Assembly (NCBI GenBank): GCA_036785375.1
Contig: JAWMAR010000070.1
Coordinates: 4,836,001 to 4,900,000 of the forward strand
Reading direction: 5' to 3'
Source of the DNA: Leucoraja ocellata
Lineage: Eukaryota
DNA: 64,000 bases
Every line of letters starts with the position of its first letter. The first letter of the stretch is position 1. The notes below the pieces were generated by a model. It made no database searches. It was not told the DNA's origin and saw only the letters and a program-made list of their open reading frames with translations. Both the position numbers and the translations under genes were made by a program. Shown piece after piece: positions 3,386 through 62,686 of this stretch.

Positions 3386-3434
3386 ACAACTCAAACGCAG
3401 TGCAGGGACCAAACCGATCCAACGTAGCCGAGAC

Positions 3435-6500: not shown

Positions 6501-9500
6501 AGAGAGACACAAAATGCTGGAGTAACTCAGCGGGACGGGCAGCATCTCTGGGGAGAAGGAAATGGGCGAGGAAACATCACCCGTCGGTTTCTCCAGAGAT
6601 GCTGCCTGTCCCGCTGAGTTACTCCGGCTCTTTGTGTCTATCTTTGGTGTAAACCAGCACCTGCAGTTCCTTGCTACACATGATCTATGCGAAACCATGA
6701 ACCTGTCTGAACAGCACAAATGACATGTTTTTTATTGTTAAACCTCAGCTTGTGTTACTGCAGTGTGAGTGATCTTTCATCATTAATGTGCCCACAGGGT
6801 CAAGGGGAATAACTGAACCCGAGGAGGTGAGGGGAGAGTTGGGGCAGTCGGTCACAGTGGAATGTCAGTATGATCGGAAATACAAAGACAACGACAAGCT
6901 ATGGAGTAAAGGTGATTATTTCGTTCCATCTTCTACCGTGGTTTCTACTGATCACCCACAACAAGGGAGAACATCGATGACTGATGACAAATCACAACGG
7001 ATAGTTTCAGTCACCATCGACAACCTGGAGAAGAGTGATGAAGGACTCTACTGGTGTGTGATAGTAAAGGGAAATCATTTGCCCATTGTATCGACCTCCA
7101 TCTCATTGAAGGTTTCTGAAGGTAAGTTGCCGATCTCTCCTCACTCTCCCAGATGTGAAAATTCCAGCCTGTGAATTCCCGGCCTCGGTCCTGACGGTGA
7201 CTCGGTGCCACATCCCCGGGGGTCGCGGTAAGGGGGTTGGGTGGATAACTCACTTACTGGGGTCCTGGCCCGTGGGGCCACACCAAGAGCTCACTGTCCC
7301 AGGAGCAATATGGGGGGGGGGGGGGGGACTGTCAGACACCAGCCCCACGGAAGGTCCCATCTACCGGCGGTTCTGTTGCTGACGGCTCATTTCCACGAAG
7401 ACGATCGCTCCGGGACCAGAACCTCTGCCGCCCCCTCACTGGGGCAGGTGGTGGGAAACCCGGGTGGAGATAGGAGTCAATGGGGGAGGGGGCAGGTTAG
7501 TAGAAGATACTTAAAATTAGAGAACCAACGTTCAAACCGTTGGGTTGTAAACTACCTGAGCCCAATATGAGGTGCGGTTCCTCCAATTTGCATGTGGCCT
7601 CACTCTGGCAATGGAGGAGGCCCAGGACAGAAAGGTCAGTGTGGGAATGGGAAGGGACATGGACAGGGTTGGCAACCGGGAGATCAAGAATGGTCCCGAC
7701 CCGAAAAGGACACCTATCCATTTTCTCCAGAGATTCCGCCTGATCCGCCGAGTTACTCCAGCACTTTGTGTCTATCTTTGGTGTAAACCAGCACCTGCAG
7801 TTCCTTTCTACACATGATCTATGCGAAACCATGAACCTGTCTGAACAGCACAAATGACATGTTTTTTATTGTTAAACCTCAGCTTGTGTTACTGCAGTGT
7901 GAGTGATCTTTCATCATTAATGTGTCCACAGGGTCAAGGGGAATAACTGGACCCAAGGAGGTGAGGGGAGAGTTGGGGCAGTCGGTCACTGTGGAATGTC
8001 CGTATGGTCAGGAATACATTGACAACAAGAAGCAATGGAGGAAAGGTTATTATTACACACTATCTGATACCGTGGTTTCTACTGATGACCCACCACAAGG
8101 GAGAACATCGATGACTGATGACAAAACACAACGGATAGTTTCAGTAACCATCGACAACCTGGAGAAGAGTGATGAAGGATACTACTGGTGTGTCATAGTA
8201 CGATGGAACTTCAGTGAAAAGACCTCCATCTTATTGACGGTTTCTGAAGGTACGTTGACGATCTCTCCTCACTCTCCCAGAGGTGAACATTCCAGCCTGG
8301 GAATTCCCGGCCTCGGTCGTGAGGGTGACTCGGTGCCTCATCCCCGGCGGTCGTGGGGGGGGGGGGGGAGCTCATCAATGGGGACCGGCGGTCCTGCTGC
8401 TGGCGGCTCATTTCCCCAAACACGATCGCTCCAGGACCAGAACACATGGTGCCCCCTCACTGAGACGGGGGGGGGGGGGGGGAGAGATCTGCCCCCTCAC
8501 CCTCTCCCCCTGCCCGTCACTGTCACACCCACCACGCACACAACATCTGAAGAAGGGTCCCAACCTTAAACATCATCTATTCATTCCTTCCACGGATGCT
8601 GCCTGACCTGCTGAGTTACTCCAGCACTTTGTGTTTTGCTCAAGATTCCAGCACCTGCAATTCCTTGTGTCTCACAAACTTTGGTGAATCATGAGCTCAG
8701 TTTATTGTTGGCGTCTGTACTGAGGTACAGGGAAAAGCTTTTACCATGTTTCCAATGAGGGCCAAGTCATTGTGTATTTTCAGGTGGAGATTGACCGGTT
8801 CTCAATTAGTACGGGTGTCAAGCGATATGGGGAGAAGGCAGGAGAATGGGGTTAAGAGGGAGAGATAGATCAGCCATGATTGAAAGGCGGAATAGACTCA
8901 ATGGGCCAAATGGCCTCAATCTGCCCCTATCACTTATGAACTAATGAACTAAGAATCCTCATGAGATGAGTGATATAGACTTTACACTGAGTCACACAAA
9001 CTGTACAAGATGAGATACTCAACGGGTCGGGCAGCTTCTGTGGAGAGAGAACGAGAGTTAATGTTTCAGGTAGATACCTCCAACCAAATTGCATTATTTC
9101 CAATTCAGTCCGCGTAATGAAAATAGTCCATGGATCCTCCCGCTCCCAAGTTCTTCTCCAATGTAGAAGACATGTGCCTAACTCTAGCAGCAGGCAGATA
9201 ACACAGCCTGTGGGACTCTGAAGGGCATGAAAGAAGTCTCTGAATGCTTGCGACAATCTGGTGGCATCTTAATGGGTGAGCCTCCGGTCTAGATCAAGAG
9301 GCTTCGTCCATCTATGGTGGCCTCAGAAGGATCTTTGCTCAAATGTATGGATTGGGATTTGAACCCAGGAATCTCCCCACACAGAGCAAGAGCACTCCCG
9401 ACTGAGGCATCTCCCACACATCACTAAAGTGGCACAGAACGTGATTTCAGACATTTTTTTATTTATTTTATTTTATTTTTTTAATTTTTATTAGCAGTAC

Positions 9501-12500
9501 AGTAAATCACATTAATACATCGCATATATCTTATTACATTATGTTGTACCACTTCATTTTTTGAGCTTTAAAAAAGAAAGAAATAAAATAAATAAGAAAA
9601 GTAAGCAAGAATCGTGAAGGTGCAGGAAAGTGTTGGGAGAAAAGAACCCCTTAGGGAAGGAATTAGAGAAGGAAGCAAAGAAAATAAATAAGACCCTAGA
9701 ATGAAAAGAAAAAAAGGAAAAAAGGAAAGTCAGTCGCTCTATTGTAACACAAAACTCCGCAAAAAAGGATATACCAACCATGTTTTTATTAAAAATTTCT
9801 TTTATACCCCCCATTACCAGGTCCTGGTAGCCTTTATATTTTAATTTATTATTGCACCTTAGCTTGTAATAGTTCCATAAATGCAGACCACGTCTTTTGG
9901 AAGTGATCTGCTATACCTGCTAGGAGGAGACTCATCTCTTCCAAGTGTAATGTTTCGAACATGTTTGAAATCCACATTTTTGTTGTTGGTATTGGAGCAT
10001 TTTTCCAAAATTTAAGTATAAGCTTTTTTCCGATTATTAGCCCATAATTAAGTAAGTTATTTTGAAACATATTTAATTCTGGGTTACCTTCCGATATTCC
10101 AAAAATGATCAATTCTACTCTAGGTAGAAGTTTTGTTTTAAATAATTTTGTAAAGATTTCAAATATTTAGTTCCAGAATTTTTGAATTTTTATACAGAAA
10201 ACAAAAGAGTGCGCTATGTTAGCTTCTTGTACCTGACATTTATCACAAATGGGTGAGACATTGGGGAAGAGTTTATTTATTTTAGTTTTTTAATAATATA
10301 GTCTGTGTAATGTTTTATATTGGATTAGAGTATGTCGTACGTTGATCGAGCATTTATGCACATATAATAAGTGTTTATCCCAGCTCTCTTTTGAAATTTT
10401 TATAGCTAATTCTTGTTCCCAATCTCTTCTAATATTATCTGTTGTAGGTATTTCTATATTCAATATAATATTATATAAGTATGATATTAGATTTGCTGAT
10501 TCAGCCTTTATCTTCATGGCTTCATCTAATAAGTCTGGGGGCATATTATAATAGTCTTTTGTACATTTTTTCAGATAATTACGGATTTGAAGATATTTAA
10601 AATATTGATTATTTTTCAAGTTATATTTCAGTTGTAATTGTTGAAATGGTAATAATTTCCCTAATTTATACAGGTCTCCGAGCGTTTTGATTCCCGTTCT
10701 TTCCCATTGTGTAAATGATTTATCTATAATTGAGGGTTTAAACGAAGGGTTATTGGCTATTGGCATTAGCAGAGATAGATTTCTTAATTTTAAGTTCTGT
10801 TTTATTTGTTTCCAAGTTCTAATTGTATTATGTACTATTGGATTTTTATTATAATATTTGTTATTCAAATTCGTTGGTGAGAGGAGAGTCGCGCCTGTAT
10901 TACCAGGAGCGCAGTCCTCTCTCTCCATTATAATCCAGTCCACCTGCTGGGCAGAGTTGTCCAGCAGGTGAATCATATTTTTAATATTTACCGCCCAATT
11001 ATAGTACATAAAGTTAGGGAGCGCTAGACCACCCATCTCTTTTGGTTTACTGAGGTGTGCTCTTTGTATTCTGTGGGATTTATAATCCCATATAAAGTTT
11101 GTGATGTCTGAGTCTAATTTTTTGAAAAAAAATGTTGGAAGATATATTGGAATTGATTGAAATAAATATAGGATTTGTGGTAAAAAAAATCATTTTTATA
11201 GCATTTATTCGACCTATTAAAGACATAGGCAGCGTTTTCCAGAATTTAATTAGATTGTTTAATTTCTTAAGTAAGGGGCTATAATTAGCATTAAACATAC
11301 CGTGGTAATTTCTAGTGATTTCAATTCCTAAATATTTAAATTTTTCTGTAGCTATTTTAAAGGGGAATTTCAAAAGATGTGTTGAGTCTTTCGGTTTTAT
11401 TGACATAATTTCACTTTTGTTCCAGTTTATTCTGTATCCTGAGAAAGATCCGAAATCCTCGATTAGCTTTAATATGTTTGGTATACTGATTTGGGGTTTT
11501 GTGATATATAGTAATACATCGTCTGCATATAAGGATATTTTGTTATTTGAATGTTTTGTATTATACCCATAGATGTCAGGATGTGTTCTAATATTTTCAG
11601 CTAAGGGTTCAATTACTAGAGCGAATAGTAGCAGTGATAATGAACACCCTTATCTATTGCCCTTTGTTAATTGAAATTTCGTAGATACTATATATTATTA
11701 GTTAATATTCTAGCCGTGGGTTTGTTATATAATAATTTTATCCATGCGATAAAGCTCTCTCCCATTTGAAATTTTTGCAATACTTTAAACATATAATCCC
11801 ATTCTACTTGATCAAACGCTTTTTCTGCGTCCAATGAAATGATAGATAACTCTTGTTCTTGAGATTTGTGAGAGTGCATTATGTTAAGCAGACGTCTCAG
11901 GTTATTAAATGAGTGTCTCTTAGGTATAAATCCCGTCTGATCCTTATTTATTAATTTACTGACATATTGACTTAATCTTCTAGCTAGTATTTTCACTAAT
12001 ATTTTTTGATCAGTATTTAACAATGCAATAGCTCTGTATGATCCTGGTTCTTCTATATCTTTATCTTTTTTAAGTATTAGTGTGATCGTTGATTCTGCTA
12101 GTGTTTCAGGTAAGATTTGTTCTTTAAAAGCAAATGTATACATTTTCTGTAGACGTGGGGTCACTGTATCGTAAAAACATTTATAAAATTCATTACTGAA
12201 TCCGTCTGGTCCTGGTGTTTTTCCATTATTAAGTGTGTTTATTGTGTCTTCTATTTCCTTAGCTGTAATTTGTGCTCCCAGTTCCTCTTGTTCTTTCAAT
12301 TCTAATTTTGGGAGGTTACAATCGGTCAAAAATTCTGAAGCTTTGTTATTGTCTATTAGCGTTTTCGATGTATATAAGTTCTTATAATATTGAGCAAATC
12401 TTTTATTGATATCCTTAGGTGGTGTTAATAATTCCCCTCTATCTGATTTAATCTTCAAAATTGTATGATCTTTTTCCCGTTTTTTCAATTGGCGTGCCAA

Positions 12501-15500
12501 AAGTTTATGGGTTTAATCCCCAAATTCAAAACATTCTTGTTTGGTAGTTTGGAATAATCTTATAATCTTCTCTGATAGTAATTTATTTAGCTTAAATTTC
12601 AGAATTAAAATTTTGTTATGTTTATCCATAGTTGGATCTTTAGCATTATCTATATCTAGTTGTCTGATTTGTTCTTCTAATTGTCTTTGTTCATTTTTAT
12701 TCTTTTTGTTTTGAAAAGCTTGATACGAGATAATGACTCCTCTAATAAATGCTTTGAAGGATTCCCATAATAAAGTAGGCGAAATATCTGGTGTATCATT
12801 TATCTCAAAAAATAGATCCATTTGTTTTTTTAGATATATACTCCCTTGTGGGTCTTTCAAAATTTGCGAGTTAAACCTCCAGAACGATGTGTTCATAGAG
12901 ATTCCTTCCAATTTTAAAACAAAAGATAGCGGGGAATGATCTGAAATCGTATTAGTGTGGTATTTAGGGTTAAGAGTATAAGGAATTAGTTTTGAATCCA
13001 CTAGGAAATAGTCTATGCGTGAGTATGTTTTATGCACCATTGAATAAAACGAGTATTCCCTTCCAGTCGGGTTCGCGATCCTCCAAACGTCTCCTATATT
13101 TGTATTTTTTATATATGTATTTAAGAGTTCACTAGTTTTAGATTTCCTATTACCTCTTTGTTTTTGCATCGATTTATCTAAATACGGATCTAAAGCACAG
13201 TTGAAGTCTCCTCCAATTATAACATTTTGGTAGTTGGATTCTGCGATTTTATTCAGAATTTTATTAAAAAATTGAGGATTATCAACATTGGGCGCATATA
13301 TGTTTACCAAGGTGATTGGCGTAGCATAAATCTCTCCTGTGACTATAAGGTATCTCCCTTCCTTATCTGATATAATATTCTTTGATTTGAATGGTATTCC
13401 TTTGCGAATAATAATTGCGGTGCCTCTAGGTTTCGATGTGTATGAGGAGTGAAATGTTTGGCCTATCCATTTCGCCCTCAATCTCATCTGGTCTTGATGT
13501 TTAAGGTGCGTTTCTTGAAGAAACGAAATGTCCGTGTTATATGATTTCAACTGAGCTAGTATTTTGCCCCTTTTAATTGGTTCATTAATACCCCTTATAT
13601 TCCAGCTCCAGCTGTGATTCCTCCTTTAATGTCCAAAAACTTAATTCACTTTATCTCCACAAGGGTCTCAAACAAGCCGCCCAGACATGGTCATCACCAC
13701 CTCTGCAACAATAAACAGAAGGGCTCGGACCACCCTGCCTCAAGATGCACCAAGCACCCGGGCAGCAAGTTCCACTGAGTCTCATGGTTCAACACTTCCA
13801 AACAGGTTAGTAACTCGAAGAGCCAACTCAGCCTCACCTGAGAACAAATTAGTTAAGTTCAATTCAGCTCAGTTTAAAGATACAGCGTGGAAATGGACCC
13901 CTTGACCCACCGAGTCCGCTCTGAGCAGCGATCACCCCATACACCAGTTCTGTTCTACACACTAGGGGCAACTTACTACAAACCCGCACGTCTTTGGAAT
14001 GTGGGAGGAAACTGGAGAACCCAGAGTAAACTCTTGCGATCACAGGGAGAACGTACAGACTCTGCACTGACAGCACCGGTATCAGGATCAACCCCGCGTC
14101 TACTGTGCTGTGAGGCAGCAACTCTACCGCTGAGCTGACATCTCAATGGGCGAGCCTCATGTCTAGATCAAGGGGCTTGGTCCATCTATGGTGGCCTAGG
14201 AAGGATCCTTGCTCAAATCTCAGGTTTGGGATTCGAATCAAGAATCTCCCCACACAGAGCAAGATCGCCCCCAACTGAAGCATCTCCCACACGTCACTAA
14301 AGTGGCACAGAACGTGATTATAAACATTTAATGTTCAAAGACTTCATTCACTTTATCTTCACAAGGGTCTCAAACATATCACCCAGATATCCTCACCACT
14401 TTGGTGCGTGTGTGTGGGGGGGGGGGGGGGGGGGGGGGGTTGCACGGTGGCGCAGCGGTAGATTTGCTGCCTTACAATGCTTGTAGCGCCGGAGACCCAG
14501 GTTCGAACCCGACTACAGGTGCTGCCTGTACGGGGTTTGTACGTTATCCCACGACCGCATGGGTTTTCTCTGAGATCTTTGATTTCCTCCAACACTCTAA
14601 AGACATACAAGTATGTAAGTAGATTGGCTTGGCGTATGTGTCAATTGCCCCTAGTGTGTGTAGCCTAGTGTTAGTGTGCGAGGATCGCTGATCGGTGTGG
14701 ACTCCATGGGCCGTCGGGCCTGTTTCCGCGCTATATCTCAAAATTAAACTAAACTGGATTAAAATATGGTCACCACCACCTGAGGAACCACCACACCCAC
14801 TCTGCCTCCGGAAGCATCGACCACCAGGGGCTCCTGGTTCATCGCCTCGACACAGGTCAGTGACTCAAAGTCCCAGTACTTTGAGAAAGCGTGGCTGATC
14901 ACATTCCAGTCCATTGATAAATACTCCTTGGCACTGACTAAAGTCCCTCTGTCCTTAGTACACCCAGTGGCCCTACCATTGTGAATGTCTACCCTTATTT
15001 GATGCCAAAAACAAATAACTTCACACTTATCACGGTTCAATTTCTGCTGGCATTGCTCTGCCCAACATACCAGTTGCTTCTTATCCCTCTGTGGTCTATG
15101 ATTATCGTACTATCCAAAATGATACAATGTTGGTGTAATCTGTAAACTCGTAAATCATACTTCCAACATTAACATCTAAGGCCGGCAGATGGGACTAGTG
15201 TAGATAAGGACATCTTGGTCGGCGTGGGGGAAATTGGGTCAAAGGACATGTTTTCGTGCTCTATGTCTGACCATCAAAATGAACATCTAAGTTGTTAATG
15301 TATGTAGTCATGGAACACCTCCAAGGAATGGGTGCATGTTGCGATATCAACATCTCACCAATGTCCACGCCAAAACCATGGATCACACTGAATGATTCCG
15401 TGTGCAATATGATGAAAGAAAATTGCCAGCGTTGATCTGTGGTAACTCTGTGTGGAAGTAATAATATTTCCTTGGATTTCCAGGGACATCGTGCTGAACA

Positions 15501-16997
15501 TCGTTTGCCGTGTTTGGGGTGTGTTACGCTGGGTACTCTTTGGAATTCTGCTTCTCTTCCCGGTTTCCATCAGCTGTGTGACAACTTTGAAAAGGTGAAA
15601 GTTTGCAATCTCTTCACTCTGATGTTCACATTAAATTCAACTGGAAATGATGGGAATTTACTTTCGATTTGTAGAGATAAAGTGTGGACATACAGTGCCC
15701 TCCGTAATGTTTGGGACAAAGACCCTTCATTTATTTATTTGCCTCTGTATTCCACAATTTGAGATTTGTAGTTGAAAAAATCACATGTGGTTAAAGTGCA
15801 CATTGTCAGATTTTATTAAAGGGTATACAGCCAATCAAGTCCGCACCGACCAATGATCACCCCGTACACGCGCACTATCCTACACACGAGGGACAATTTA
15901 CAATTATACAGAGGCCAATTAACCTACAAAACTACACATCTTTGGATTGTGGTAAGAAACCGGAGCACCTGGATAAAACCCACGCTGTCACAGGCAGAAC
16001 ATACAAACTCCGTACAGACAGCACCCGTAGTCATGATCAAACCCGGGTCTCTGACGCTGTAAGGCAGCAACTCTACCGCTGCGCCACTGTGCCGCCCTGG
16101 GTCATTTCCTCGGGTAAAATTTGATGGTGGAGATTATAAACTGTGTTTTAATTGTTATTCAAGGAAAAAAACAGCCAAGACCTTGGAGATGGGGTCGGCA
16201 GTGGTGGAGGAAGGAGAGGAACAGCGCCGGTGAGCTGGCTGGGTGAGGCCTCACCTCGCATGGAGACGGCCGTGGGAGGCGAGAGGAAAGGGTGCGTTGG
16301 TGGGTCGAGGTGTGGGCGGAGTGCGAGTGGGCTGCTGGAGGCCCTGCAGCAGCCGGTGGATCGGGTACCGCTGGAGGCCCCACAGAGGTTGGGGACGAGC
16401 GCACGGATCGGACACGGCCTGCAGCGGCACGGAGCGGTGGTGGAGGCACCGACAACATCGCCAGGCCAGGCCGACCCCTGCAACTCCCACCCAGTGCCGT
16501 CTCCATGACAACGGGCCTTTAAGCCCAAAATAAAATGGGCCTTTAAGCCCAGTTTGATGTTTAAGAATATAAGATACTGCCAGAAATGTGGCAACTCTTG
16601 TGTACTGCATCATATAATCTGCTATTAATACTCTTGTTCTTAGCTTCAGCTGTGCTTATATCAAGTAAGATTTTTACTGAATTCTATACAAAAGAAATGT
16701 CACTGTACCCATGTGCATGAGACAATAAAGTACCATTGAACCATTGAACAATGGGGATATAAAAACGGTTAAATGATTACGTATTGAACTGTGGACACGC
16801 GTTAGAAGAATAAGATAAAAATGAAGGGTAATCGTTATATCAATATTGTTATTCTGACGGAATGACGCCCAATAATCATCGTTTAGCTTTTCAGGGCCAG
16901 AGAGGGTGTTCACCAGTTGGAGATGTACAAATCTCATCACCTTGACCCTACAGCATCACCACACCACACCTATGTCCAATCTACCTTGACCACTTGA
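3435..16997 (+). CDS. Gene A: two-Ig-V-domain CD300/pIgR-like (MDIR-like) type I membrane receptor, 364 aa, join(3435..3531,6798..7121,7932..8249,13664..13805,15484..15594,16895..16997)
   Basis: Six exons with GT/AG boundaries and compatible phases (1,1,1,2,2) total 1095 nt with no internal stop. They encode signal peptide, two V-set domains, mucin stalk, TM and tail. The last exon is the least certain. Confidence 0.85.
3785..4148 (+). mobile_element. Short CR1 3' fragment in intron 1 (copies near 40475-40835 and 57660-58020)
   Basis: KGLDRVD...SRTRG...WNSLP peptide and a typical 3' tail. Confidence 0.7.
4935..5232 (+). mobile_element. Rex1/Babar-like LINE fragment, 3'-deleted (same deletion in C at about 41652-41929)
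   Basis: Same peptide as the D copy, ending at HPSHHI. Confidence 0.75.
6798..7121 (+). CDS. Gene A Ig V1 exon (type alpha)
   Basis: cccacag| ... GAAG|gtaagt; GQSVTVEC, W, DEGLYWC V-set motifs; 324 nt. Confidence 0.95.
7932..8249 (+). CDS. Gene A Ig V2 exon (type gamma)
   Basis: tccacag| ... GAAG|gtacgt; DEGYYWC; 318 nt. Confidence 0.95.
9454..13627 (-). mobile_element. L1-clade LINE, 5'-truncated (ORF2 + 3'UTR + poly-A), degenerate, in the gene A V2-stalk intron
   Basis: APE endonuclease motifs (FLQETH, GDFN, YSRIDY, SDHSP), RT (PGPDG, LDAEKAFD, LYADD) and T-tract at the left end. Several frameshifts/stops. Empty site in B and D. Confidence 0.93.
13664..13805 (+). CDS. Gene A Ser/Thr-rich stalk exon
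   Basis: ctccacaag| GSQTSRPDMVITTSAT...STLPN |gttagt; phase 1 to 2. Confidence 0.8.
14366..14855 (+). pseudogene. Duplicate stalk pseudo-exon disrupted by a SINE (copies at 30300-30792 and 51056-51555)
   Basis: Same acceptor context (cttcacaag|ggtctcaaaca) and similar 3' end (...cacag|gt) as the functional stalk; upstream intron also duplicated. Confidence 0.7.
14438..14755 (+). repeat. tRNA-derived SINE inside the duplicate stalk exon (copies at 30377-30692 and 51138-51455)
   Basis: A box GTGGCGCAGCGG, B box GGTTCGA(A/T)CC, (taaac)n tail. Confidence 0.8.
15484..15594 (+). CDS. Gene A transmembrane exon (R)DIVLNIVCRVWGVLRWVLFGILLLFPVSISCVTTLK(R)
   Basis: atttccag| acceptor at phase 2, matching the stalk; hydrophobic span with Arg. 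Confidence 0.85.
15693..15822 (+). mobile_element. Tc1/mariner-like terminal fragment (copies at 31413-31542 and 52386-52515)
   Basis: TA|CAGTGCCCTCC(G/A)TAATGTTTGGGAC: TA target plus CAGTG terminus; no partner end seen. Confidence 0.55.
16895..16997 (+). CDS. Gene A putative cytoplasmic exon (R)AREGVHQLEMYKSHHLDPTASPHHTYVQSTLTT*
   Basis: gcttttcag| acceptor, phase-2 compatible, conserved in A/B/C, followed by a conserved AATAAA about 400 nt downstream. Confidence 0.55.
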
Positions 16998-17391
16998 GGA
17001 GGAATTTCTTTAGCTAGAGGATGATGAATCTGTGGAATTCATTGCCACAGGCGGCTGTGGAGGCCAAGTCAATGGATATTTTTAAATTGGAGATTGACAG
17101 GTTTATTCAGGGTGTCAAAGGTTGAGGGGAGAAGGCAGGAGAATGGGATGGAGGGGGAAAGATAGATCATCCATGATTGAATGGCGGAGTAGACTCGATG
17201 GAGCAAATGGCCGAATTCTGCACCTATGTTTGCAGACACGTCTGTACATCCTGACATTCACCCAAAAGACAGCAGAACATAGACTAGAACTCAAAGCTGG
17301 CTTTCCAGAATGTGAACTTTTAACTTTATTACCAAATTAATTGCTGTGGAAAACCCGGTACATTGAATAATGATTAAAATAATCAAACGTA

Positions 17392-17397
17392 AATAAA
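17392..17397 (+). terminator. Candidate polyadenylation signal AATAAA (also 33111-33116 and 54087-54092)
   Basis: Conserved in A/B/C about 400 nt after the stop; similarity of A to B/C breaks down about 30 nt further on. Confidence 0.5.
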
Positions 17398-17775
17398 GAT
17401 GGCTGAATTTTTGTCATAAAGTCATGTGAAAAGAGTAGTATTAGGCCATTCGGCCCATCAAGTCTACTTCACCATTCAATCATGGCTGATCTATCTCTTA
17501 CTCCCAACCCCATTCTCCAGCCTTCTCCCCATAACCTGTGACACATGTACTAATTAAGAATCTATCTGGTGACGTGAGTGGACGTACCTGATCACGTTTG
17601 GCGTTGTCTTATTTCACCTGGGTAATGTTTCAACAGATGAGAAGCTGAGGAAGGCTGGACAAATTAGTGACGTGCATTTTGAGGTGGGTAAACAGATCAC
17701 AAGCTCGCACGTTCCAGGAGTAGAATTTGGCCATTCGGCCCATCGAGTCTACTCCACCATTCAAACATGGCTGAT

Positions 17776-20396: not shown

Positions 20397-20493
20397 ATGG
20401 CGGTGGGACAGGGAGAATTCACCCACCAGAGACGGCCCAGATCCAGGGGAACAGTCGCTCTGTTGGTTCTTGTCGCTGTTGGTCTCACATCAG
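20397..20493 (+). CDS. Gene B leader exon
   Basis: Paralog of the A leader, ends ...VGLTS G|gtaaat. Confidence 0.85.
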
Positions 20494-26400: not shown

Positions 26401-29400
26401 GTAGATTCAGAAGCAGTGTTCAAGAAGGATCTGCAGATGCTGGAAGATAGATATCACAGTGGAGTAGACAAAGTGTTCAAGAAGGAACTCAGTTCTGCTT
26501 TCACTGGAACTTGGGGAACAATCCCGGTGAAATGGGAATTAACACCAGCGGGAAAAGCATTAAAGTGCAACAGGATCTATGCAAAAGAAGAGAGACACAA
26601 AATGCTGGAGTAACTCAGCGGGACGGGCAGCATCTCTGGAGAGAAGGAATGGGCGGGGAAACATCACCCGTCGGTTTCTCCAGAGATGCTGCCTGGCCCG
26701 CTGAGTTACTCCAGCACTTTGTGTCTTTCTTTGGTGTAAACCAGCACCTGCAGTTCCTTTCTACACATGATCTATGCAAAACCATGAACCTGTCTGAACA
26801 GCACAAATGACATGTTTTTTACTGTTAAACCACAGCTTGTGTTACTGCAGTGTGAGTGATCTTTCATCATTAATGTGCCAACAGGGTCAAGGGGAATAAC
26901 TGGACCCGAGGAGGTGAGGGGAAAGTTGGGGCAGTCGGTCACTGTGGAATGTCCGTATGATCGGAAATACAAAGACAACGACAAGCTATGGAGTAAAGGT
27001 GATTATTTCCTTCCATCTTCTACCGTGGTTTCTACTGATCACCCACAACAAGGGAGAACATCGATGAGTGATGACAAAGCACAACGGATAGTTTCAGTCA
27101 CCATCAACAAGCTGGAGGAGAGTGATGAAGGACTCTACTGGTGTGTGATAGTAAAGGGAAAACATTCGCTCATTGAATCGGCCTCCATCTCATTGAATGT
27201 TTCTGAAGGTACGTTGCCGATCTCTCCTCACTCTCCCAGATGTGAAAATTCCAGCCTGTGAATTCCCGGCCTCGGTCCTGACGGTGACTCGGTGCCACAT
27301 CCCCGGGGGGTCGCGGTAAGGGGGTTGGGTGGATAACTCATTTACTGGGGTCCCGGCCCGTGGGGCCACACCAAGAGCTCACTGTCGCTGGAGCAATATG
27401 GGGGGGGGGGGGGCTGTCAGACACCAGCCCCACGGAAGGTCCCATCTACCGGCGGTTCTGTTGCTGACGGCTCATTTCCACGAAGACGATCGCTCCGGGA
27501 CCAGAACCTCTGCCGCCCCCTCACTGGGGCAGGTGGTGGGAAACCCGGGTGGAGATAGGAGTCAATGGGGGAGGGGGCAGGTTAGTAGAAGATACTTAAA
27601 ATTAGAGAACCAACGTTCAAACCGTTGGGTTGTAAACTACCTGAGCCCAATATGAGGTGCGGTTCCTCCAATTTGCATGTGGCCTCACTCTGGCAATGGA
27701 GGAGGCCCAGGACAGAAAGGTCAGTGTGGGAATGGGAAGGGACATGGACAGGGTTGGCAACCGGGAGATCAAGAATGGTCCCGACCCGAAAACCAGCACC
27801 TGCAGTTCCTTGCTACACATGATCTATGCGAAACCATGAACCTGTCTGAACAGCACAAATGACATGTTTTTTATTGTTAAACCTCAGCTTGTGTTACTGC
27901 AGTGTGAGTGATCTTTCATCATTAATGTGCCCACAGGGTCAAGGGGAATAACTGGACCCAAGGAGGTGAGGGGAGAGTTGGGGCAGTCGGTCACTGTGGA
28001 ATGTCAGTATGGTCAGGAATACACTGACAACAAGAAGCTATGGAGTAAAGGTTATTATTTCACACTATCTGAGACCGTGGTTTCTACTGATTACTCACCA
28101 CAAGGGAGAACATCGATGACTGATAACAAAACACAACGGATAGTTTCAGTAACCATCGACAACCTGCAGAAGAGTGATGAAGGACGCTACTGGTGTGTGA
28201 TTGTAAAGGGAATATTTTCAAGCGATGAAAGGACCTCCATCTCATTGACGGTTTCTGAAGGTACGTTGACGATCTCTCCTCACTCTCCCAGATGTGAACA
28301 TTCCAGCCTGGGAATTCCCGGCCTCGGTCCTGACGGTGACTCGGTGCCACATCCCCGGGGGTCGGGGTGAAAGAGGGGGGAGCACATTTACTGGGGTCCC
28401 GGCCCATGGGGCCACACCAAGAGCCCACTGTCCCAGGAGCAGTGTGTGTGTGTGGGGTGTGGGGGGGGCTCATCAATGGGGACCGGCGGTTCTGCTGCTG
28501 GCGGCTCATTTCCCCAAAGACGATCGCTCCGGGTCCAGAACCTCTGCCGCCCCTCACTGGAGCAGGGGAACAGCCAGAACCTCTGGTGCCCCCTCACCCT
28601 CTCCCCCTGCCCGTCACTGTCACACCCACCACACACACATCTGAAGAAGGGTCCCAACCTTAAGCATTGTCAGTTCATTCCTTCCACGGATGCTGCCTGA
28701 CCTGCTGAGTTACTCCAGCACTTTGTGTTTTGTTCAAGATTCCAGCACCTGCAATTCCTTGTGTCTCACAAACTTTGGTGATTCATGAGTTCAGTTTATT
28801 GTTGTCGTCTGTACTGAGGTACAGGGAAAAGCTTTTACCATGTTTCCAATGAGGGCCAAGTCATTGGGTATTTTCAGGTGGAGATTGACAGTTTCTCCAT
28901 TAGTACGGGTGTCAAGTGATATGGGGAGAAGGCAGGAGAATGGGTTTGAGAGGGAGAGATAGATCAGCCATGATTGAAAGGCGGAATAGACTCAATGAGC
29001 CAATGGCCTCAATCTGCCCCTATCACTTATGAACTAATGAACTAAGAATCCTCAAGAGATGAGTGATATAGACTTTACACTGAGCCACACAAACTGTACA
29101 AGATGAGATACTCAACGGGTCGGGCAGCTTCTGTGGAGAGAGAACGAGAGTTGATGTTTCAGGTAGATACCTCCAACCAAATTGCATTATTTCCAATTCA
29201 GTCCGCGTAATGAAAATAGTCCATGGATCCTCCCGCTCCCAAGTTCTTCTCCAATGTAGAAGACATGTGCCTAACTCTAGCAGCAGGCAGATAACACAGC
29301 CTGTGGGACTCTGAAGGGCATGAAACAAGTCTCTGAATGCTTGTGACAATCTGGTGGCATCTTAGTGGGTGAGCTTCCGGTCTAGATCAAGAGGCTTGGT

Positions 29401-30339: not shown

Positions 30340-30370
<31 letters not shown>

Positions 30371-40126: not shown

Positions 40127-40223
40127 ATGGCGGTGGGACAGGGAGAATTCACCCACCAGAGATGGCCCAGATCCAGGGGAACAGTCGCTCTGTTGGTTCT
40201 TGTCGCTGTTGGTCTCACACCAG
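40127..40223 (+). CDS. Gene C leader exon
   Basis: MAVGQGEFTHQRWPRSRGTVALLVLVAVGLTP G|gtaaat. Confidence 0.85.
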
Positions 40224-43200: not shown

Positions 43201-46200
43201 AGAGAAACAAAATGCTGGAGTAACTCAGCGGGACGGGCAGCATCTCTGGAGAGAAGGAATGGGTGAGGAAACATCACCCGTCGGTTTCTCCAGAGATGCT
43301 GCCTGTCCCGCTGAGTTACTCCAGCTCTTTGTGTCTATCTTTGGTGTAAACCAGCACCTGCAGTTCCTTGCTACACATGATCTATGTGAAACCATGAACC
43401 TGTCTGAACAGCACAAATGACATGTTTTTTATTGTTAAACTGTGTTTGTGTTACTGCAGTGTGAGTGATCTTTCATCATTAATGTGCCAACAGGGTCAAG
43501 CGGAATAACTGAACCCGAGGAGGTGAGGGGAGTGTTGGGGCAGTCGGTCACAGTGGAATGTCAGTATGGTCAGGAATACAGTGACTACAGGAAGCTGTGG
43601 AGGAAAGGTGATTCTTACCAGAAATCTTATATTGTGCTTTCTACTGATGACCAACGACGAGGGAGAACATCGATGACTGATGACAAAGCACAATGGATAG
43701 TTTTAGTCACCATCGACAACCTGGAGAAGAGTGATGAAGGACTCTACTGGTGTGTGATAGTAAAGAGAAACGATTCACCCATTGAATCGACCTCCATCTC
43801 ATTGACGGTTTCTGAAGGTAAGTTGCCGATCTCTCCTCACTCTCCCAGATGTGAAAATTCCAGCCTGGGAATTCCCGGCCTCGGTCCTGACGGTGACTCG
43901 GTGCCACATCCCCGGGGGGTCGCGGTAAGGGGGCTGGGTGGATAACTCACTTACTGGGGTCCCGGCCCGTGGGGCCACACCAAGAGCTCACTGTCCCAGG
44001 AGCAATATGGGGGGGGGGGACTGTCAGACACCAGCCCCACGGAAGGTCCCATCTACCGGCGGTTCTGTTGCTGACGGCTCATTTCCACGAAGACGATCGC
44101 TCCGGGACCAGAACCTCTGCCGCCCCCTCACTGGGGCAGGTGGTGGGAAACCCGGGTGGAGATAGGAGTCAATGGGGGAGGGGGCAGGTTAGTAGAAGAT
44201 ACTTAAAATTAGAGAACCAACGTTCAAACCGTTGGGTTGTAAACTACCTGAGCCCAATATGAGGTGCGGTTCCTCCAATTTGCCTGTGGCCTCACTCTGG
44301 CAATGGAGGAGGCCCAGGACAGAAAGGTCAGTGTGGGAATGGGAAGGGACATGGACAGGGTTGGCAACCGGGAGATCAAGAATGGTCCCGACCCGAAAAA
44401 GACACCTATCCATTTTCTCCAGAGATTCTGCCTGATCCGCCGAGTTACTCCAGCACTTTGTGTCTATCTTTGGTGTAAACCAGCACCTGCAGTTCCTTTC
44501 TACACATGATCTATGCGAAACCATGAACCTGTCTGAACAGCACAAATGACATGTTTTTTATTGTTAAACCTCAGCTTGTGTTACTGCAGTGTGAGTGATC
44601 TTTCATCATTAATGTGTCCACAGGGTCAAGGGGAATAACTGGACCCAAGGAGGTGAGGGGAGAGTTGGGGCAGTCGGTCACTGTGGAATGTCCGTATGGT
44701 CAGGAATACATTGACAACAAGAAGCAATGGAGGAAAGGTTATTATTACACACTATCTGATACCGTGGTTTCTACTGATGACCCACCACAAGGGAGAACAT
44801 CGATGACTGATGACAAAACACAACGGATAGTTTCAGTAACCATCGACAACCTGGAGAAGAGTGATGAAGGATACTACTGGTGTGTCATAGTACGATGGAA
44901 CTTCAGTGAAAAGACCTCCATCTTATTGACGGTTTCTGAAGGTACGTTGACGATCTCTCCTCACTCTCCCAGAGGTGAACATTCCAGCCTGGGAATTCCC
45001 GGCCTCGGTCGTGAGGGTGACTCGGTGCCTCATCCCCGGCGGTCGTGGGGGGGGGGGGGGGGGGAGCTCATCAATGGGGACCGGCGGTCCTGCTGCTGGC
45101 GGCTCATTTCCCCAAACACGATCGCTCCAGGACCAGAACACATGGTGCCCCCTCACTGAGACGGGGGGGGGGGGGGGGGGAGAGATCTGCCCCCTCACCC
45201 TCTCCCCCTGCCCGTCACTGTCACACCCACCACGCACACAACATCTGAAGAAGGGTCCCAACCTTAAACATCATCTATTCATTCCTTCCACGGATGCTGC
45301 CTGACCTGCTGAGTTACTCCAGCACTTTGTGTTTTGCTCAAGATTCCAGCACCTGCAATTCCTTGTGTCTCACAAACTTTGGTGAATCATGAGCTCAGTT
45401 TATTGTTGGCGTCTGTACTGAGGTACAGGGAAAAGCTTTTACCATGTTTCCAATGAGGGCCAAGTCATTGTGTATTTTCAGGTGGAGATTGACCGGTTCT
45501 CAATTAGTACGGGTGTCAAGCGATATGGGGAGAAGGCAGGAGAATGGGGTTGAGAGGGAGAGATAGATCAGCCATGATTGAAAGGCGGAATAGACTCAAT
45601 GGGCCAAATGGCCTCAATCTGCCCCTATCACTTATGAACTAATGAACTAAGAATCCTCATGAGATGAGTGATATAGACTTTACACTGAGTCACACAAACT
45701 GTACAAGATGAGATACTCAACGGGTCGGGCAGCTTCTGTGGAGAGAGAACGAGAGTTAATGTTTCAGGTAGATACCTCCAACCAAATTGCATTATTTCCA
45801 ATTCAGTCCGCGTAATGAAAATAGTCCATGGATCCTCCCGCTCCCAAGTTCTTCTCCAATGTAGAAGACATGTGCCTAACTCTAGCAGCAGGCAGATAAC
45901 ACAGCCTGTGGGACTCTGAAGGGCATGAAAGAAGTCTCTGAATGCTTGCGACAATCTGGTGGCATCTTAATGGGTGAGCCTCCGGTCTAGATCAAGAGGC
46001 TTCGTCCATCTATGGTGGCCTCAGAAGGATCTTTGCTCAAATGTATGGATTGGGATTTGTACCCAGGAATCTCCCCACATGGAGCAAGAGCGCTCCCGAC
46101 TGAAGCATCTCCCACACATCACTAAAGTGGCACAGAACGTGCTTTCAGACATTTTTTTTTTTTTTTTTTAATTTTATTTTTATTAGCAGTACAGTAAATC

Positions 46201-51105: not shown

Positions 51106-51136
<31 letters not shown>

Positions 51137-53693: not shown

Positions 53694-55363
53694 GGAGGAA
53701 TTTCTTTAGCCAGAGGGTGATGAATCTGTGGAATTCATTGCCACAGGCGGCTGTGGAGGCCAAGTCAATGGATATTTTTAAATTGGAGATTGACAGGTTT
53801 ACTCAGGGTGTCAAAGGTTGAGGGGAGAAGGCAGGAGAATGGGATGGAGGGGGAAAGATAGATCATCCATGATTGAATGGCGGAGTAGACTCGATGGAGC
53901 AAATGGCCGAATTCTGTACCTATGTTTGCAGACACGTCTGTACATCCTGACATTCACCCAAAAGACAGCAGAACATAGACTAGAACTCAAAGCTGGCTTT
54001 CCAGAATGTGAACTTTTAACTTTACTACCAATTGAATTGCTGTGTGAAACCCTGCACATTGAATAATGATTAAAATAATCCAATGTAATAAAAGATGGCT
54101 GAATTTTTGTCATAAAGTCATAAGTGATAAGAGTAGAATTAGTTTGGTTTAGAGATAGCGCATGGAAACAGGCCCATTGATCCACCGAGTCCATGCCGAC
54201 CACTGATCACCTGTACACACTATGTTTAAGAAGGAACAGCACATGCTGGAAAAGCGAAGGTAGACAAAAACGCTGAGTTTCTCCAGCATTGTTGTCTACC
54301 TGTACACACACTAGTTCTGTTATCCCACTTTCTCATCCATTCCCTACACATTTGCGACAATCTTGCAGAGGTATTTAACCTACAAACTCGCATGGATTAG
54401 GGATGTGGGAGGAAGCCGGAGCACCTGGAGGAAACCCATGAGGTCACAGGGAGAACATTCAAACTCCACACAGACAGCACCCGTAGAGAGGATCGAACCC
54501 GGGTCTCTGGCGCTGTGAGGCAGCAGCAAACCGCTGCACCACCGTGCCGCCCTGAAGAGAGAGAGCAGGCTTGTGAGAGCAGACAGCAGAGCAGCAGGCC
54601 AGCTAAATGCCTCATCAGAGTGACAGCACCTTCAGCTACTTTAGACACAGTGTTTAGGACAAACAGAATCAAGGGATATGGGGAGAGAGCAGGAACTGGG
54701 TACTGATTTAGGTTGATCTGCCACGATCATATTGAATGGTTCAAATGGCCGAATGGCCGAATGGCCTACTCCAGCGCCTATTTTCTATGCTTCTATGTTT
54801 CCATAGCAGAGCTCCCTCAGTACAACTCTCCCTCCGTGCTCGGCGTTCTGGAGTGGGAACTGAACCAACATCTCTCTAACTCACTCAATAGTTTTCACCC
54901 ACTGAGCTTGCACTGCAGGACCCAACACTGGGCCTTGGTGTGGCTCAGTTAGCGTGGTAAAGTCACACAGGACTCCTGCTAGAAACAGCGTGCGAAATGT
55001 TGCACTTAGACCACAGGTCTCACATTGAAAACCATGTGAAACCCAACCGCTTCTGAAAGGAAGCACCGCGATGACTTTTCATGTTTGCATTCAAGGAATC
55101 TGTGGCAACCTCTTTAGTTTAGCCTATTATAGTCATGTGTACAGAGGTGCAGTGAAAAGCTTTTCTGATGTATGATATCCAGTCAGCGAAAACACTATAC
55201 GATTACAATCAAGCCATCCACAGGATACAGGTACAGGATAATCCGACCTCTACAATGTAATCTCACAGAGGCTGATGGGTACATGGAGGGAGCATGTCCA
55301 GAGAAGGTAGTGTAGACAGGTACTAGTAACAACATTGAAAAGCATAAGGACATGGTATGTGGA

Positions 55364-57342: not shown

Positions 57343-57439
57343 ATGGCGGTGGGACAGGGAGAATTCACCCACCAGAGACGGCCCAGATCCAGGGGAACAG
57401 TCGCTCTGTTGGTTCTTGTCGCTGTTGGTCTCACACCAG
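57343..57439 (+). CDS. Gene D leader exon
   Basis: Same peptide as the A leader; phase-1 donor. Confidence 0.85.
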
Positions 57440-60400: not shown

Positions 60401-62686
60401 TCATCTATCCACTTTCTCCAGAGATAGTTCCTGTCCAGTTTAAGGTTGTGACCTCAATAACGGGTAGGCCATTGAGGACTCAGATGAGGAAATATCTTTT
60501 CACCCAGAGAGTTCCACTTTCTCCAGAGATAGTTCCTGTCCCGTTGTGTTACTCCGGCACTTTGTGTCCTTTTGTACATTAACCAGCATCTGCAGTTCCT
60601 TGTTTCTACTAGTTCAATGGGGAAGTGGGTTGTAGTGAGATTGAACACAGGGTGGGTCAGAGTGAGTGACAGGTTGGCTTCCTGTCACATGACCACCACT
60701 CAGGTCAAGCCACGCCCACAGGGAAGGAGGATCTGGGCGCCAGGTAGATTCAGAAGCAGTGTTCAAGAAGGAACTGCAGATGCTGGAAGATAGATATCGC
60801 AGTGGAGTAGACAAAGTGTTCAAGAAGGAACTCAGTTCTGCTTTCACTGGAACTTGGGGAACAATCCCGGTGAAATGGGAATTATCACCAGCGGGAAAAC
60901 CATTAAAGTGCAACAGGATCTATGCAAAAGAAGAGAGACACAAAATGCTGGAGTAACTCAGCGGGACGGGCAGCATCTCTGGAGAGAAGGAAATGGGTGT
61001 GGAATCATCACCCGTCGGTTTCTCCAGAGATGCTGCCTGTCCCGCTGAGTTACTCCGGCTCTTTGTGTCTATCTTTGGTGTAAACCAGCACCTGCAGTTC
61101 CTTGCTACACATGATCTATGCGAAACCATGAACCTGTCTGAACAGCACAAATGACATGTTTTTTATTGTTAAAGCTCAGCTTGTGTTGCTGCAGTGTGAG
61201 TGATCTTTCATCATTAATGTTCCCACAGGGTCAAGGGGAATAACTGAACCCGTGGAGGTGAGGGGAGAGTTGGGGCAGTCGGTCAAAGTGGAATGTCAGT
61301 ATGGTCAGGAATACAAGGACAACAGGAAGCTGTGGACTAAAGGTGATTCTTACCAGAAATCTTATATTGTGGATTCTACTGATCACCCACAACGAGGGAG
61401 AACATCGATGACTGATGACAAAAAAGAACGGATAGTTTTAGTCACCATCGACGACCTGGAGGAGAGTGATGAAGGTCTCTACTGGTGTGTGATAGTAAAG
61501 AGAAACGATTCACTCATGGAATTGGCCTCCATCTCATTGAAGGTTTCTGAAGGTACGTTGACGATCTCTCCTCACTCTCCCAGATGTGAACATTCCAGCC
61601 TGTGAATTCCCGGCCTCGGTCCTGACGGTGACTCGGTGCCACATCCCCGGGGGTCGCTGTAAGGGGGTGGGGTGGATAACTCACTTACTGGGGTCCCGGC
61701 CCGTGGGGCCACACCAAGAGCTCACTGTCGCCGGAGCAATATGGGGGGGGGGGGGGGACTGCCAGACACCAGCCCCACGGAAGGTCCCATCTACCGGCGG
61801 TTCTGTTGCTGACGGCTCATTTCCACGAAGACGATCGCTCCGGGACCAGAACCTCTGCCGCCCCCTCACTGGGGCAGGTGGTGGGAAACCTGGGTGGAGA
61901 TAGGTGTCAATGGGGGAGGGGGCAGGTTAGTAGAAGATACTTAAAATTAGAGAACCAACGTTCAAACCGTTGGGTTGTAAACTACCTGAGCCCAATATGA
62001 GGTGCGGTTCCTCCAATTTGCATGTGGCCTCACTCTGGCAATGGAGGAGGCCCAGGACAGAAAGGTCAGTGTGGGAATGGGAAGGGACATGGACAGGGTT
62101 GGCAACCGGGAGATCAAGAATGGTCCCGACCCGAAAAGGACACCTATCCATTTTCTCCAGAGATTCTGCCTGATCCGCCGAGTTACTCCAGCACGTTGTG
62201 TCTGTCTTTGGTGTAAACCAGCACCTGCAGTTCCTTGCTACACATGATCTATGCAAAACCATGAACCTGTCTGAACAGCACAAATGACATGTTTTTTTAT
62301 TGTTAAACCACAGCTTGTGTTGCTGCAGTGTGAGTGATCTTTCATCATTAATGTGTCCACAGGGTCAAGGGGAATAACTGGACCCGAGGAGGTGAGGGGA
62401 GAGTTGGGGCAGTCGGTCACTGTGGAATGTCAGTATGGTCAGGAATACAGTGACTACAAGAAGCTGTGGAGTAAAGGTTATTATTACCGGTCATCTTCTA
62501 TCGTGGTTTCTACTGATGACCCACGACGAGGGAGAACATCGATAAGTGATAACAAAACACAACGGATAGTTTCAGTAACCATCGGCAACCTGGAGAAGAG
62601 TGATGAAGGACGCTACTGGTGTGCGATTGCAAAGGGAACATTTTCAAGCGATGAAAGGACCTCCATCTCATTGACGGTTTCTGAAG
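57343..62686 (+). CDS. Gene D (partial): leader 57343..57439, V1 61229..61552, V2 62363..62686; stalk, TM and tail lie beyond the window
   Basis: Intact leader and two V exons. The window ends at ...ttcactttatctcca, immediately before the stalk acceptor seen in A-C. Confidence 0.85.
58975..59635 (+). mobile_element. Rex1/Babar-like LINE 3' end in gene D intron 1
   Basis: LRRLRKAGL...FYRGTIESILT...LPSGKRYRS...SFFPQAIRL; (tactgaa)n tail. Confidence 0.8.
59638..60130. mobile_element. hAT-like non-autonomous element end (CAGGGCCGGCC...) with purine/pyrimidine-rich interior; terminus deleted in the A and C copies
   Basis: Terminal motif typical of hAT MITEs; partner TIR not found. Confidence 0.4.
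61229..61552 (+). CDS. Gene D Ig V1 exon (type beta)
   Basis: AG/GT bounded, 324 nt. Confidence 0.95.
62363..62686 (+). CDS. Gene D Ig V2 exon (type delta)
   Basis: AG/GT bounded, 324 nt. Confidence 0.95.

Follow-up and report, generated by a model that had tools for sequence, protein, structure and literature searches.

A 64-kb stretch of DNA from Leucoraja ocellata (GenBank assembly GCA_036785375.1, contig JAWMAR010000070.1, positions 4,836,001 to 4,900,000 of the forward strand), hereafter called the window, contains no N and is a succession of large tandem repeats. Between 548-17444 and 37235-54142 the match is 97.5%, and four units are linked by shorter blocks. In the window, four genes, A to D, form a tandem array, each consisting of a leader, two variable-type (V) immunoglobulin (Ig) domains (V1 and V2), a stalk, a transmembrane segment containing arginine, and a short cytoplasmic tail (Table 1). 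The full layout was read in genes A, B and C, whilst gene D comprises leader, V1 and V2, its 3' exons lying past the end of the window. The array probably encodes two-V-domain cell-surface receptors of activating type, which belong to the CD300/pIgR (CMRF35-like) branch of the immunoglobulin superfamily of a skate-like cartilaginous fish, are homogenised by exchange and are under diversifying selection. This degree of confidence applies jointly to receptor identity, homogenising exchange and selection.

All eight V exons, named below by gene and slot (A1 to D2), have an AG/G acceptor, a G/GT donor and phase 1-1 boundaries, and they are free of stop codons and frameshifts, as was stated in a preliminary description made from the sequence. 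The span given there for the array, 6798-62686, begins and ends on the first and the last V exon base, and the seven FG-loop motifs that it quoted are all found in the exons. A2 and C2 are shorter than the others (318 nt) by a two-codon deletion in the FG loop. Residues C22, W35, D80, G82, Y84 and C86 are kept in all eight domains. In genes A, B and C, the transmembrane exon reads ...CRVWGVLRWVLFGILLLFPVSISCV... and the tail, KKTAKTLEMGSAVVEEGEEQRR, is devoid of tyrosine. Thus, the three complete genes are all of the activating type, and no inhibitory form is present within the window. Presumably, the receptors signal via an adaptor that is bound by the transmembrane arginine. All searches were run exon by exon, and the exons were never joined into a spliced model.

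Table 1. Features of the receptor array, with window positions (nt, nucleotides; AF2, AlphaFold2; pLDDT, predicted local distance difference test score; P0002, pIgR-like protein of Leucoraja erinacea)
Feature	Position	Strand	Evidence and remarks
Gene A V1 exon	6798..7121	+	324 nt, phase 1-1; FG loop KGNHLPIV; splice sites and open frame; Pfam V-set 2.2e-14; AF2 pLDDT 94.1
Gene A V2 exon	7932..8249	+	318 nt; FG loop RWNFSEK; N-glycosylation sequon at residue 92; same sequence as C2
Gene B V1 exon	26885..27208	+	FG loop KGKHSLIE; 16 nt from A1 (15 non-synonymous, 1 synonymous)
Gene B V2 exon	27937..28260	+	FG loop KGIFSSDER; FG/G cassette shared with the third V domain of P0002 (18/18 residues identical)
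Gene C V1 exon	43494..43817	+	FG loop KRNDSPIE; 11.7% from A1, surrounding 17 kb about 2%
Gene C V2 exon	44624..44941	+	Same sequence as A2
Gene D V1 exon	61229..61552	+	FG loop KRNDSLME; 24.5 non-synonymous and 1.5 synonymous differences from C1
Gene D V2 exon	62363..62686	+	FG loop KGTFSSDER; first half groups with C1/D1, second half with B2
A/C low-divergence tract	7140..9064 (C counterpart ~43836-45760)	.	0-0.6% against a background of 1.2-3.4%, 500-nt windows of the A/C alignment
Gene A leader exon	3435..3531	+	tblastn with P0002 residues 1-35, 91-100% identity; ends approximate
Leader exon counterparts	B 20397-20493, C 40127-40223, D 57343-57439	+	tblastn; ends approximate
Gene A stalk exon, Ser/Thr/Pro-rich	13664..13805	+	tblastn with P0002 and alignment; ends approximate
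Stalk exon counterparts	~29558-29740 in B, ~50326-50496 in C	+	tblastn and alignment
Gene A transmembrane exon	15484..15598	+	Arg residues in membrane span (DIVLNIVCRVWGVLRWVLFGILLLFPVSISCVTTLK); tblastn 84-87% to P0002; ends approximate
Transmembrane exon counterparts	~31204-31318 in B, ~52180-52291 in C	+	tblastn
Gene A cytoplasmic exon	16164..16233	+	22-residue tail without tyrosine, then stop; tblastn; ends approximate
Cytoplasmic exon counterparts	~31883-31952 in B, ~52857-52926 in C	+	tblastn

The Pfam V-set model (PF07686) matched all seven exon translations submitted, with scores of 47.7-54 bits (cut-off 26); C2 was left out, being identical to A2. An NCBIfam search gave nothing useful. 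Among the structures in the PDB, phmmer ranked pIgR at the top (7jg2_E, 1.3e-28, best to domain 5), and CD300/CLM-1 was found at 6e-16. In the AF2 model of A1, which was based on a 31-sequence alignment, the strands are A' (residues 9-13), B (18-24), C (32-37), C' (45-49), D (58-63), E (68-73), F (82-90) and G (94-106), with C'' as a short bridge. With Foldseek, mouse CD300lf was the closest structure (template-modelling score 0.89-0.91, 34-36% identity), IREM-1 (human CD300f) and domain 1 (D1) of pIgR also being among the top matches. Of 1.84 billion cluster representatives, the nearest protein is P0002, with 77% identity over one domain. This 'polymeric immunoglobulin receptor-like' protein of Leucoraja erinacea has 468 residues and three V domains, and its leader is identical to that of gene C over 33 residues. 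The next homologues are from other rays, sawfish and sharks and are named pIgR-like or CMRF35-like.

The C-C' disulfide, a defining feature of CD300/pIgR-type V domains that is formed by Cys36 and Cys44 in CD300lf, is missing in all eight domains. The aligned positions, which have the same spacing, carry Ser, Arg or Thr at residue 36 and Ser at residue 44, and also the alignment with pIgR D1 sets S36 and S44 on the two cysteines of D1. Most aligned homologues have Cys at both columns; the sawfish protein P0060 and the catshark protein P0073 lack both. Since these two proteins are also without them, the loss of the C-C' cysteines may, judged from the alignment, mark an older elasmobranch subfamily. 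The FG loops of P0060 and P0073 (KGTFEFNEK and GTGAFKYDEK, respectively) look like the B2/D2 type. The N-glycosylation sequons vary between the domains: A1 has none, N92, which is located within the FG loop, is present in A2, C2, C1 and D1, N104 in B1, and N63 in B2 and D2 (for example, compare the 7072-7080 region in A1 with 8206-8214 in A2).

The V exons differ between genes far more than the sequences around them. Except for A2 and C2, which are identical, they differ by 4.9-13.9% between pairs. In contrast, introns differ by 1.5-3.0% (approximately 2,750-2,830 aligned sites per pair), the leader by 0-3 of 105 nt and the transmembrane region by 2-6 of 163 nt, which bears out the earlier statement that leader, transmembrane segment and introns barely change. 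The tail shows 1-3 differences in 131 nt and the stalk 4-17 in about 200 nt. Near-invariance extends into the V exons themselves: in all eight modules, the first 66 nt and the last few codons of the exon hardly vary, and neither do the 145 nt upstream and the 105 nt downstream of it. Poly-G runs and an indel-rich stretch are found downstream of the V exons (7310-7330, 8355-8372, 8466-8485 and counterparts). Owing to these, the A/C and B/D units align poorly at ~8433-8530 (27 mismatches in 97 positions), which was taken as noise, and 8320-8560 was left out of the intron counts.

The differences within the V exons are mostly replacements. The two hand counts in the preliminary description proved exact: A1 and B1 differ at 16 nucleotides in 16 codons, 15 of them replacements and one synonymous, and B2 and D2 differ in 20 codons, 19 of which change the amino acid. 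At the nucleotide level, the latter pair has 25 differences, which path averaging divides into 21.5 non-synonymous and 3.5 synonymous. When the 12 same-slot pairs were compared, the proportion of non-synonymous differences (pN) in the exons, 6-16%, exceeded intron divergence, 1.5-3%, in 11 pairs by a factor of 2.3 to 9 (p between 4e-3 and 2e-17); the remaining pair, A2/C2, shows no difference at all. Since pN lies above the intron level, the high ratio results from fast replacements and not from slow silent sites. The proportion of synonymous differences (pS) also exceeds intron divergence in 8 of the 12 pairs and, therefore, the cores of the V exons have a deeper history than their surroundings. 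In A1/B1, C1/D1 and B2/D2, pS is at or below the intron level, whilst pN is 2.3, 3.3 and 3.1 times that level, respectively, which points to replacements that were made or fixed recently.

Selection was evaluated on the seven distinct sequences over 107 codons. With the Nei-Gojobori (NG86) method, dN/dS was above 1 in 18 of 21 distinct pairs (range 0.86-4.8). Codon models were fitted with our own Goldman-Yang likelihood code; when 40 replicates were simulated along the fitted tree with omega set to 1, this code returned a median of 1.0, the likelihood-ratio test (LRT) statistic exceeded 3.84 in 5%, and none reached an omega of 2.39. For the real data, model M0 gave precisely that omega, 2.39, with F3x4 frequencies and 2.33-2.89 under three other frequency models; the LRT against omega = 1 ranged from 11.0 to 18.4 (p<=0.0009). 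Variation among sites was marked: the M1a/M2a comparison (LRT 43.6) assigned 23% of the sites to an omega near 0, 42% to 1 and 34% to 6.75. The M7/M8 comparison that had been proposed as a check gave an LRT of 43.9, and M8a/M8 43.6. When double hits were allowed, the log-likelihood (lnL) rose by approximately 11 units, omega was 2.65 (p = 0.001) and the M1a/M2a LRT 35.1.

The preliminary description had made its inference of diversifying selection dependent on a dN/dS above 1 after correction for recombination. When the three segments of a parsimony breakpoint scan (see below) were taken as partitions and a separate topology with separate branch lengths was fitted to each, omega was 2.78 (p = 0.0002; M1a/M2a LRT 41.8). 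Tests that use no tree lead to the same result. Three close pairs that are phylogenetically independent together have 61 replacement against 6 silent differences, i.e., a pN/pS of 2.93 (one-sided Fisher test, p = 0.0027; bootstrap confidence interval (CI) 1.58-8.93). Column-wise minimum steps, in which each codon column is given its own minimal genealogy, amount to 95.8 non-synonymous and 15.2 synonymous steps (ratio 1.8, p = 0.014), and the sum over all 21 pairs gives 1.57 (CI 1.03-2.74). Also the deepest groups show values above 1, i.e., 1.78 between the V1 types and 1.55 between the V1 and V2 slots. Among the variable sites, 27, 36 and 21 are at codon positions 1, 2 and 3, respectively, so that the second position varies most. 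Two candidate mutational signatures among the variable columns were dropped: variable G/C columns show no enrichment of WRC/GYW motifs, the hotspots expected for activation-induced cytidine deaminase, or AID (odds ratio 0.93, p = 0.86), and an odds ratio of 5.6 for CpG was set aside, the test being biased by its own definition. Thus, omega exceeds 1 jointly and survives double hits, partitioning and segment-specific rates (see below), and the inference of diversifying selection is supported. Of the 'strong excess of non-synonymous change' that had been described, the excess holds in the joint tests; its strength is moderate, about 1.6-2.9 overall, and weak in single pairs.

Hypervariable segments were defined as codons 23-57 and 83-104, together 57 of the 107 codons. 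The earlier view that variation clusters in the loops applies to total change, since 73.8 of the 95.8 non-synonymous steps fall in these segments, but not to omega. Fitted alone with their own branch lengths, the segments give an omega of 2.47 (p = 0.003; M1a/M2a LRT 27.1), and the rest of the domain gives 2.46 (p = 0.07; LRT 9.5). The segments evolve 3.5 times faster than the rest at synonymous and non-synonymous sites alike. Residues with a posterior above 0.95 for omega>1, according to naive empirical Bayes estimates that are overconfident, are 29, 42, 43, 45, 52, 54, 65, 83, 92-96 and 98, 12 of these 14 being located in residues 25-57 or 91-99. By structural element, the fast sites belong to the BC loop, the CC' loop, the C'C'' region, the FG hairpin and alternate residues of strands C, F and G. 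Because side chains alternate around the core residues W35 and C86 in the V-domain topology, the variable strand residues 32, 34 and 36 (C), 83, 87 and 89 (F), and 98, 102 and 104 (G) are predicted to face outward on the G-F-C-C' sheet. The surface clustering that had been anticipated would thus take the form of a location of the fast sites on one face of the domain, as predicted from fold topology and the Cys-anchored offset.

What this face may bind is suggested by CD300lf. The floor of the ligand cleft of CD300lf is formed by the Cys36-Cys44 disulfide with Tyr34, Gln41, Arg42, Trp89 and Met100, whilst residues 94, 96 and 98 of the third complementarity-determining region (CDR3) hold a metal ion (PMC6166816). 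Mapped from the Cys anchor with a net offset of four residues, as given by the HMMER ranges, and assuming that no indel is present within the FG loop, these contact residues would correspond to 34, 41, 42, W85 and ~90-96 in the skate domains. Most of these positions are among the fastest sites, including 41, 42, 92, 94 and 96. The correspondence suggests that the variable sites match the CC'/FG ligand cleft of CD300lf.

Exchange between the genes has left its own traces. Over 17 kb, the divergence between A and C is about 2% (range 1.2-3.4%); in V1 it is 11.7%. Immediately adjoining this V1 exon is a tract of ~1.9 kb of very low A/C divergence (7140-9064), which spans the V1-V2 intron, V2 and ~0.8 kb downstream and reads as a recent homogenising conversion tract. 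Within the exons, a parsimony breakpoint at nt 180 (permutation p = 0.03) marks the point where D2 leaves the C1/D1 group and joins B2; a two-break parsimony scan gave p = 0.087, homoplasies number 21 in 126 steps, and the pairwise homoplasy index (PHI) recombination test was not significant (p 0.12-0.46). At the protein level, the third V domain of P0002 is a mosaic, in which an A1/B1-type N-terminal two-thirds is joined to the FG/G cassette of B2. Furthermore, about half of the differences between A1 and B1 are states that are found in other exons. Exchange of cassettes is part of the explanation because exon pS lies above the introns in 8 of 12 pairs and clear mosaics are present; it acts together with selection.

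In the mechanism that we propose, unequal crossing-over and gene conversion would keep introns, leader, stalk, transmembrane segment, tail and the framework ends of the V exons alike, and would also transfer loop cassettes or V-exon cores from gene to gene and across the two V slots. Diversifying selection would favor replacements on the ligand-binding face and would also oppose homogenisation of that face, which would comprise the BC and CC' loops, the beginning of C', the C'-C'' region and the FG hairpin, together with those residues of strands C, F and G that point outward. Because selection would resist homogenisation there, the cores of the V exons would remain far more divergent than their surroundings and would keep linked synonymous differences. 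The selective agent is presumably a variable ligand, e.g., a pathogen product or a polymorphic self molecule.

Evidence for expression was sought in four RNA runs with the same species label, of which 5-32% each was read and whose tissues are not known. The depth on the V exons was approximately zero, and that on the leader at most ~2. In all four runs, the reads heaped on intronic repeats with partial matches and inverted joints, which swamped any gene signal. Therefore, these data neither support nor exclude expression.

Several observations weigh against selection as proposed. In two-sided Fisher tests, only D1/D2 among the 21 distinct pairs reaches p<0.05, comparisons with A2/C2 give dN/dS values of 0.86-1.5, and the three pairs below 1 all involve A2/C2. 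An alternative trio of independent pairs is marginal (1.84, p = 0.036), and the same-slot pair tests are not mutually independent. Seven sequences are few, and the likelihood code was our own and not PAML or HyPhy. The recombination partitions rest on a marginal parsimony test, with PHI not being significant. Synonymous steps gather in the same segments as the replacements (12.2 of 15.2), where omega is no higher than elsewhere, and the assignment of the fast sites to one face derives from topology. Synonymous divergence in the exon cores lies above that of the introns in 8 of 12 pairs; much of what separates the genes was therefore imported or retained rather than made in place. Finally, the near-zero RNA depth on the V exons has to be counted on this side.

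Four other explanations may be considered. The first-ranking of these, although unlikely, is neutral shuffling of cassettes, in which conversion introduces patches from diverged paralogues in other parts of the large family, change as such is not selected for, and wrong trees together with clustered multi-base changes create a spurious excess. It would account for the mosaics and homoplasies, the synonymous divergence above the intron level, the A/C contrast, the composite third domain of P0002, the ~11 lnL units gained with double hits, and the recurrence of A1/B1 differences in other exons. However, conversion copies both classes of change alike and cannot push the ratio above that of the donors, and the ratio remains above 1 in tree-free tests, with partition-specific trees, in the double-hit model and between the deepest groups. 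Moreover, the ~5:1 ratio between types would predict about 11 synonymous differences in the close pairs, where 6 were found next to 61 replacements. A depressed synonymous rate, caused by selection on splicing enhancers or codon usage, is highly improbable and the least credible of the four. The three closest pairs, with pS values of 0.014, 0.022 and 0.048, near or below intron divergence, are as it predicts, but it leaves unexplained why pN surpasses the introns 2.3- to 9-fold in 11 of 12 pairs and why pS itself is above them in 8.

Drift of redundant or unexpressed copies towards pseudogenes is very unlikely. Under relaxed constraint, omega is expected near 1, as in the A2/C2 comparisons, and not at 2.3-2.9 with p<=0.001, and the 23-27% of sites with an omega near 0, the conserved leader, transmembrane segment and tail, and the retention of frame, splice sites, Cys22, Trp35 and the D-x-G-x-Y-x-C motif in all eight exons are difficult to reconcile with it. 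Four near-identical tandem genes do suggest redundancy, and the near-zero RNA depth on the V exons would fit as well, but the runs are of unknown tissue and were read only in part. A shade less probable still is a mutational bias, whereby CpG decay, multi-nucleotide mutation or AID-like targeting would inflate replacements. Pure mutation predicts an omega near 1, against 2.65 with double hits allowed, and by direct count CpG transitions are found in only 11 of 84 variable columns. In its favor are a double-hit rate significantly above 0, the 18 of 84 variable columns with three or more states, and a total rate that is 3.5 times higher in the hypervariable segments, synonymous sites included. 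Hence, diversifying selection combined with exchange of cassettes is preferred over each of these alternatives.

The array can be compared with several known receptor systems. It resembles CD300/CMRF35-like receptors (mouse CD300lf/CLM-1; human CD300a, c and f) in V-set fold and sequence, as described above, and in the occurrence of a multigene cluster with activating members that have a charged transmembrane residue and a short tail. Also gene conversion between the paired members CD300A and CD300C has been described in primates (PMC12447643). Unlike CD300, which has one V domain, the skate receptors have two; their domains have no C-C' disulfide, and the residues equivalent to the cleft are hypervariable among paralogues instead of being conserved for lipid head groups. 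With pIgR, they share the top sequence matches in the PDB and tandem V domains of the same subtype, and NCBI calls the closest batoid proteins 'pIgR-like'. However, two V domains, an Arg-bearing transmembrane segment, a 22-residue tail without sorting signals and the lack of the C-C' disulfide set the skate genes apart from pIgR, and a multigene array with hypervariable loops contrasts with a single conserved transport receptor.

In the clearnose skate, a multigene family with activating and inhibitory members, called modular domain immune-type receptors (MDIR), has been reported, whose V domains resemble those of CD300, TREM/TLT and pIgR (PMC3031540). The window is likewise occupied by a multigene family, and the proteins closest to it are from skates and rays. 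By this likeness, which is one of description and not of MDIR sequences, the array would fit the kind of family that is known in skates as MDIR.

The combination of homogenisation and selection has parallels elsewhere. The exons encoding the peptide-binding part of major histocompatibility complex (MHC) molecules are far more diverged than their homogenised introns, both at replacement sites and at linked silent sites. Similarly, the skate exon cores exceed the flanking introns at both classes of sites, as is expected if old exon lineages persist under selection and the flanks are made uniform by recombination, except that in the skate tandem paralogues in one haplotype are compared and not alleles. 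Concerted evolution together with selection is also well known in paired Ig-type receptors, such as KIR, LILR and NITR. In the CEACAM family, near-identical paralogues are reported to be homogenised by conversion, and the ligand-binding N domains to escape under selection (PMC7042247, PMC5112662). These paired receptors belong to another Ig subfamily and another host lineage, and the exchange in the skate additionally crosses the V1 and V2 slots of one gene.

Some further features of the array deserve mention. The intron between leader and V1 of gene B contains, on the plus strand at 24789-25733, a ghost V module from which the exon is missing, as detected with blastn. Its upstream-intron part (24789-24985) ends just before the acceptor and is directly followed by post-V2 intron sequence (24986-25733), which normally is located ~270 nt downstream of the V2 exon. 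Gene B may once have had three V modules, like P0002 of the little skate. A long interspersed nuclear element (LINE) on the minus strand, which is AT-rich (GC content 0.30-0.36) and contains endonuclease/reverse-transcriptase-like open reading frames, is found at 10290-13550 and 46542-50335, within the intron that separates V2 from the stalk in genes A and C. Gene B has none there, and the distance from V2 to the stalk is 5.4 kb in A vs. 1.3 kb in B. The longer reading frames are in the copy of gene C (599, 268 and 395 amino acids). Because the LINE is common to A and C and not present in B, A and C are the most recent duplicates. A short interspersed repeat (…GATGCTGCCTG.CCCGCTGAGTTACTCCAGC…), found at 6072-6739 and 7575-7908 and recurring many times in the window, constitutes the 5' part of the upstream intron in every V module, and it is on this repeat that the reads of the four RNA runs accumulate.

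Fast evolution of activating Ig-type receptors is taken as a trace of conflict between host and pathogen, and the majority of the well-studied examples come from mammals. A literature search, outside of which many subscription journals remained, did not reveal any selection analysis of CD300/MDIR-like V domains of skates. The array thus provides a statistically supported case of rapid evolution in a cartilaginous fish, which will not surprise specialists, since the combination is known from other paired-receptor families. Homogenisation and selection against it are both visible in a single 64-kb window, where introns differ by 1.5-3% and replacement sites by 6-16% and where a nearly identical tract of 1.9 kb is located next to an exon that differs by 11.7%. 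Residues 29, 41-45, 52-54, 83 and 92-98 are candidate determinants of ligand specificity.

Mammalian CD300 relatives bind conserved lipids, and a norovirus uses them as receptor. Tentatively, and with more doubt than is attached to the identification of the receptors, the CD300-type lipid-sensing cleft might have been rebuilt in the skate into a germline-encoded variable recognition site, of which the floor disulfide is gone and the walls, made up of the CC' loop, the FG hairpin and outward strand residues, are hypervariable under positive selection, with N-glycan sequons gained and lost. Loop and exon cassettes would be reshuffled among the tandem genes and across the V1 and V2 slots on a backbone that conversion keeps uniform, giving many combinations of V1 and V2 from a small array. 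The cleft may have become free to vary once the C-C' disulfide was lost. If true, activating receptors would in effect constitute an innate, combinatorial repertoire in one of the most ancient lineages of jawed vertebrates.

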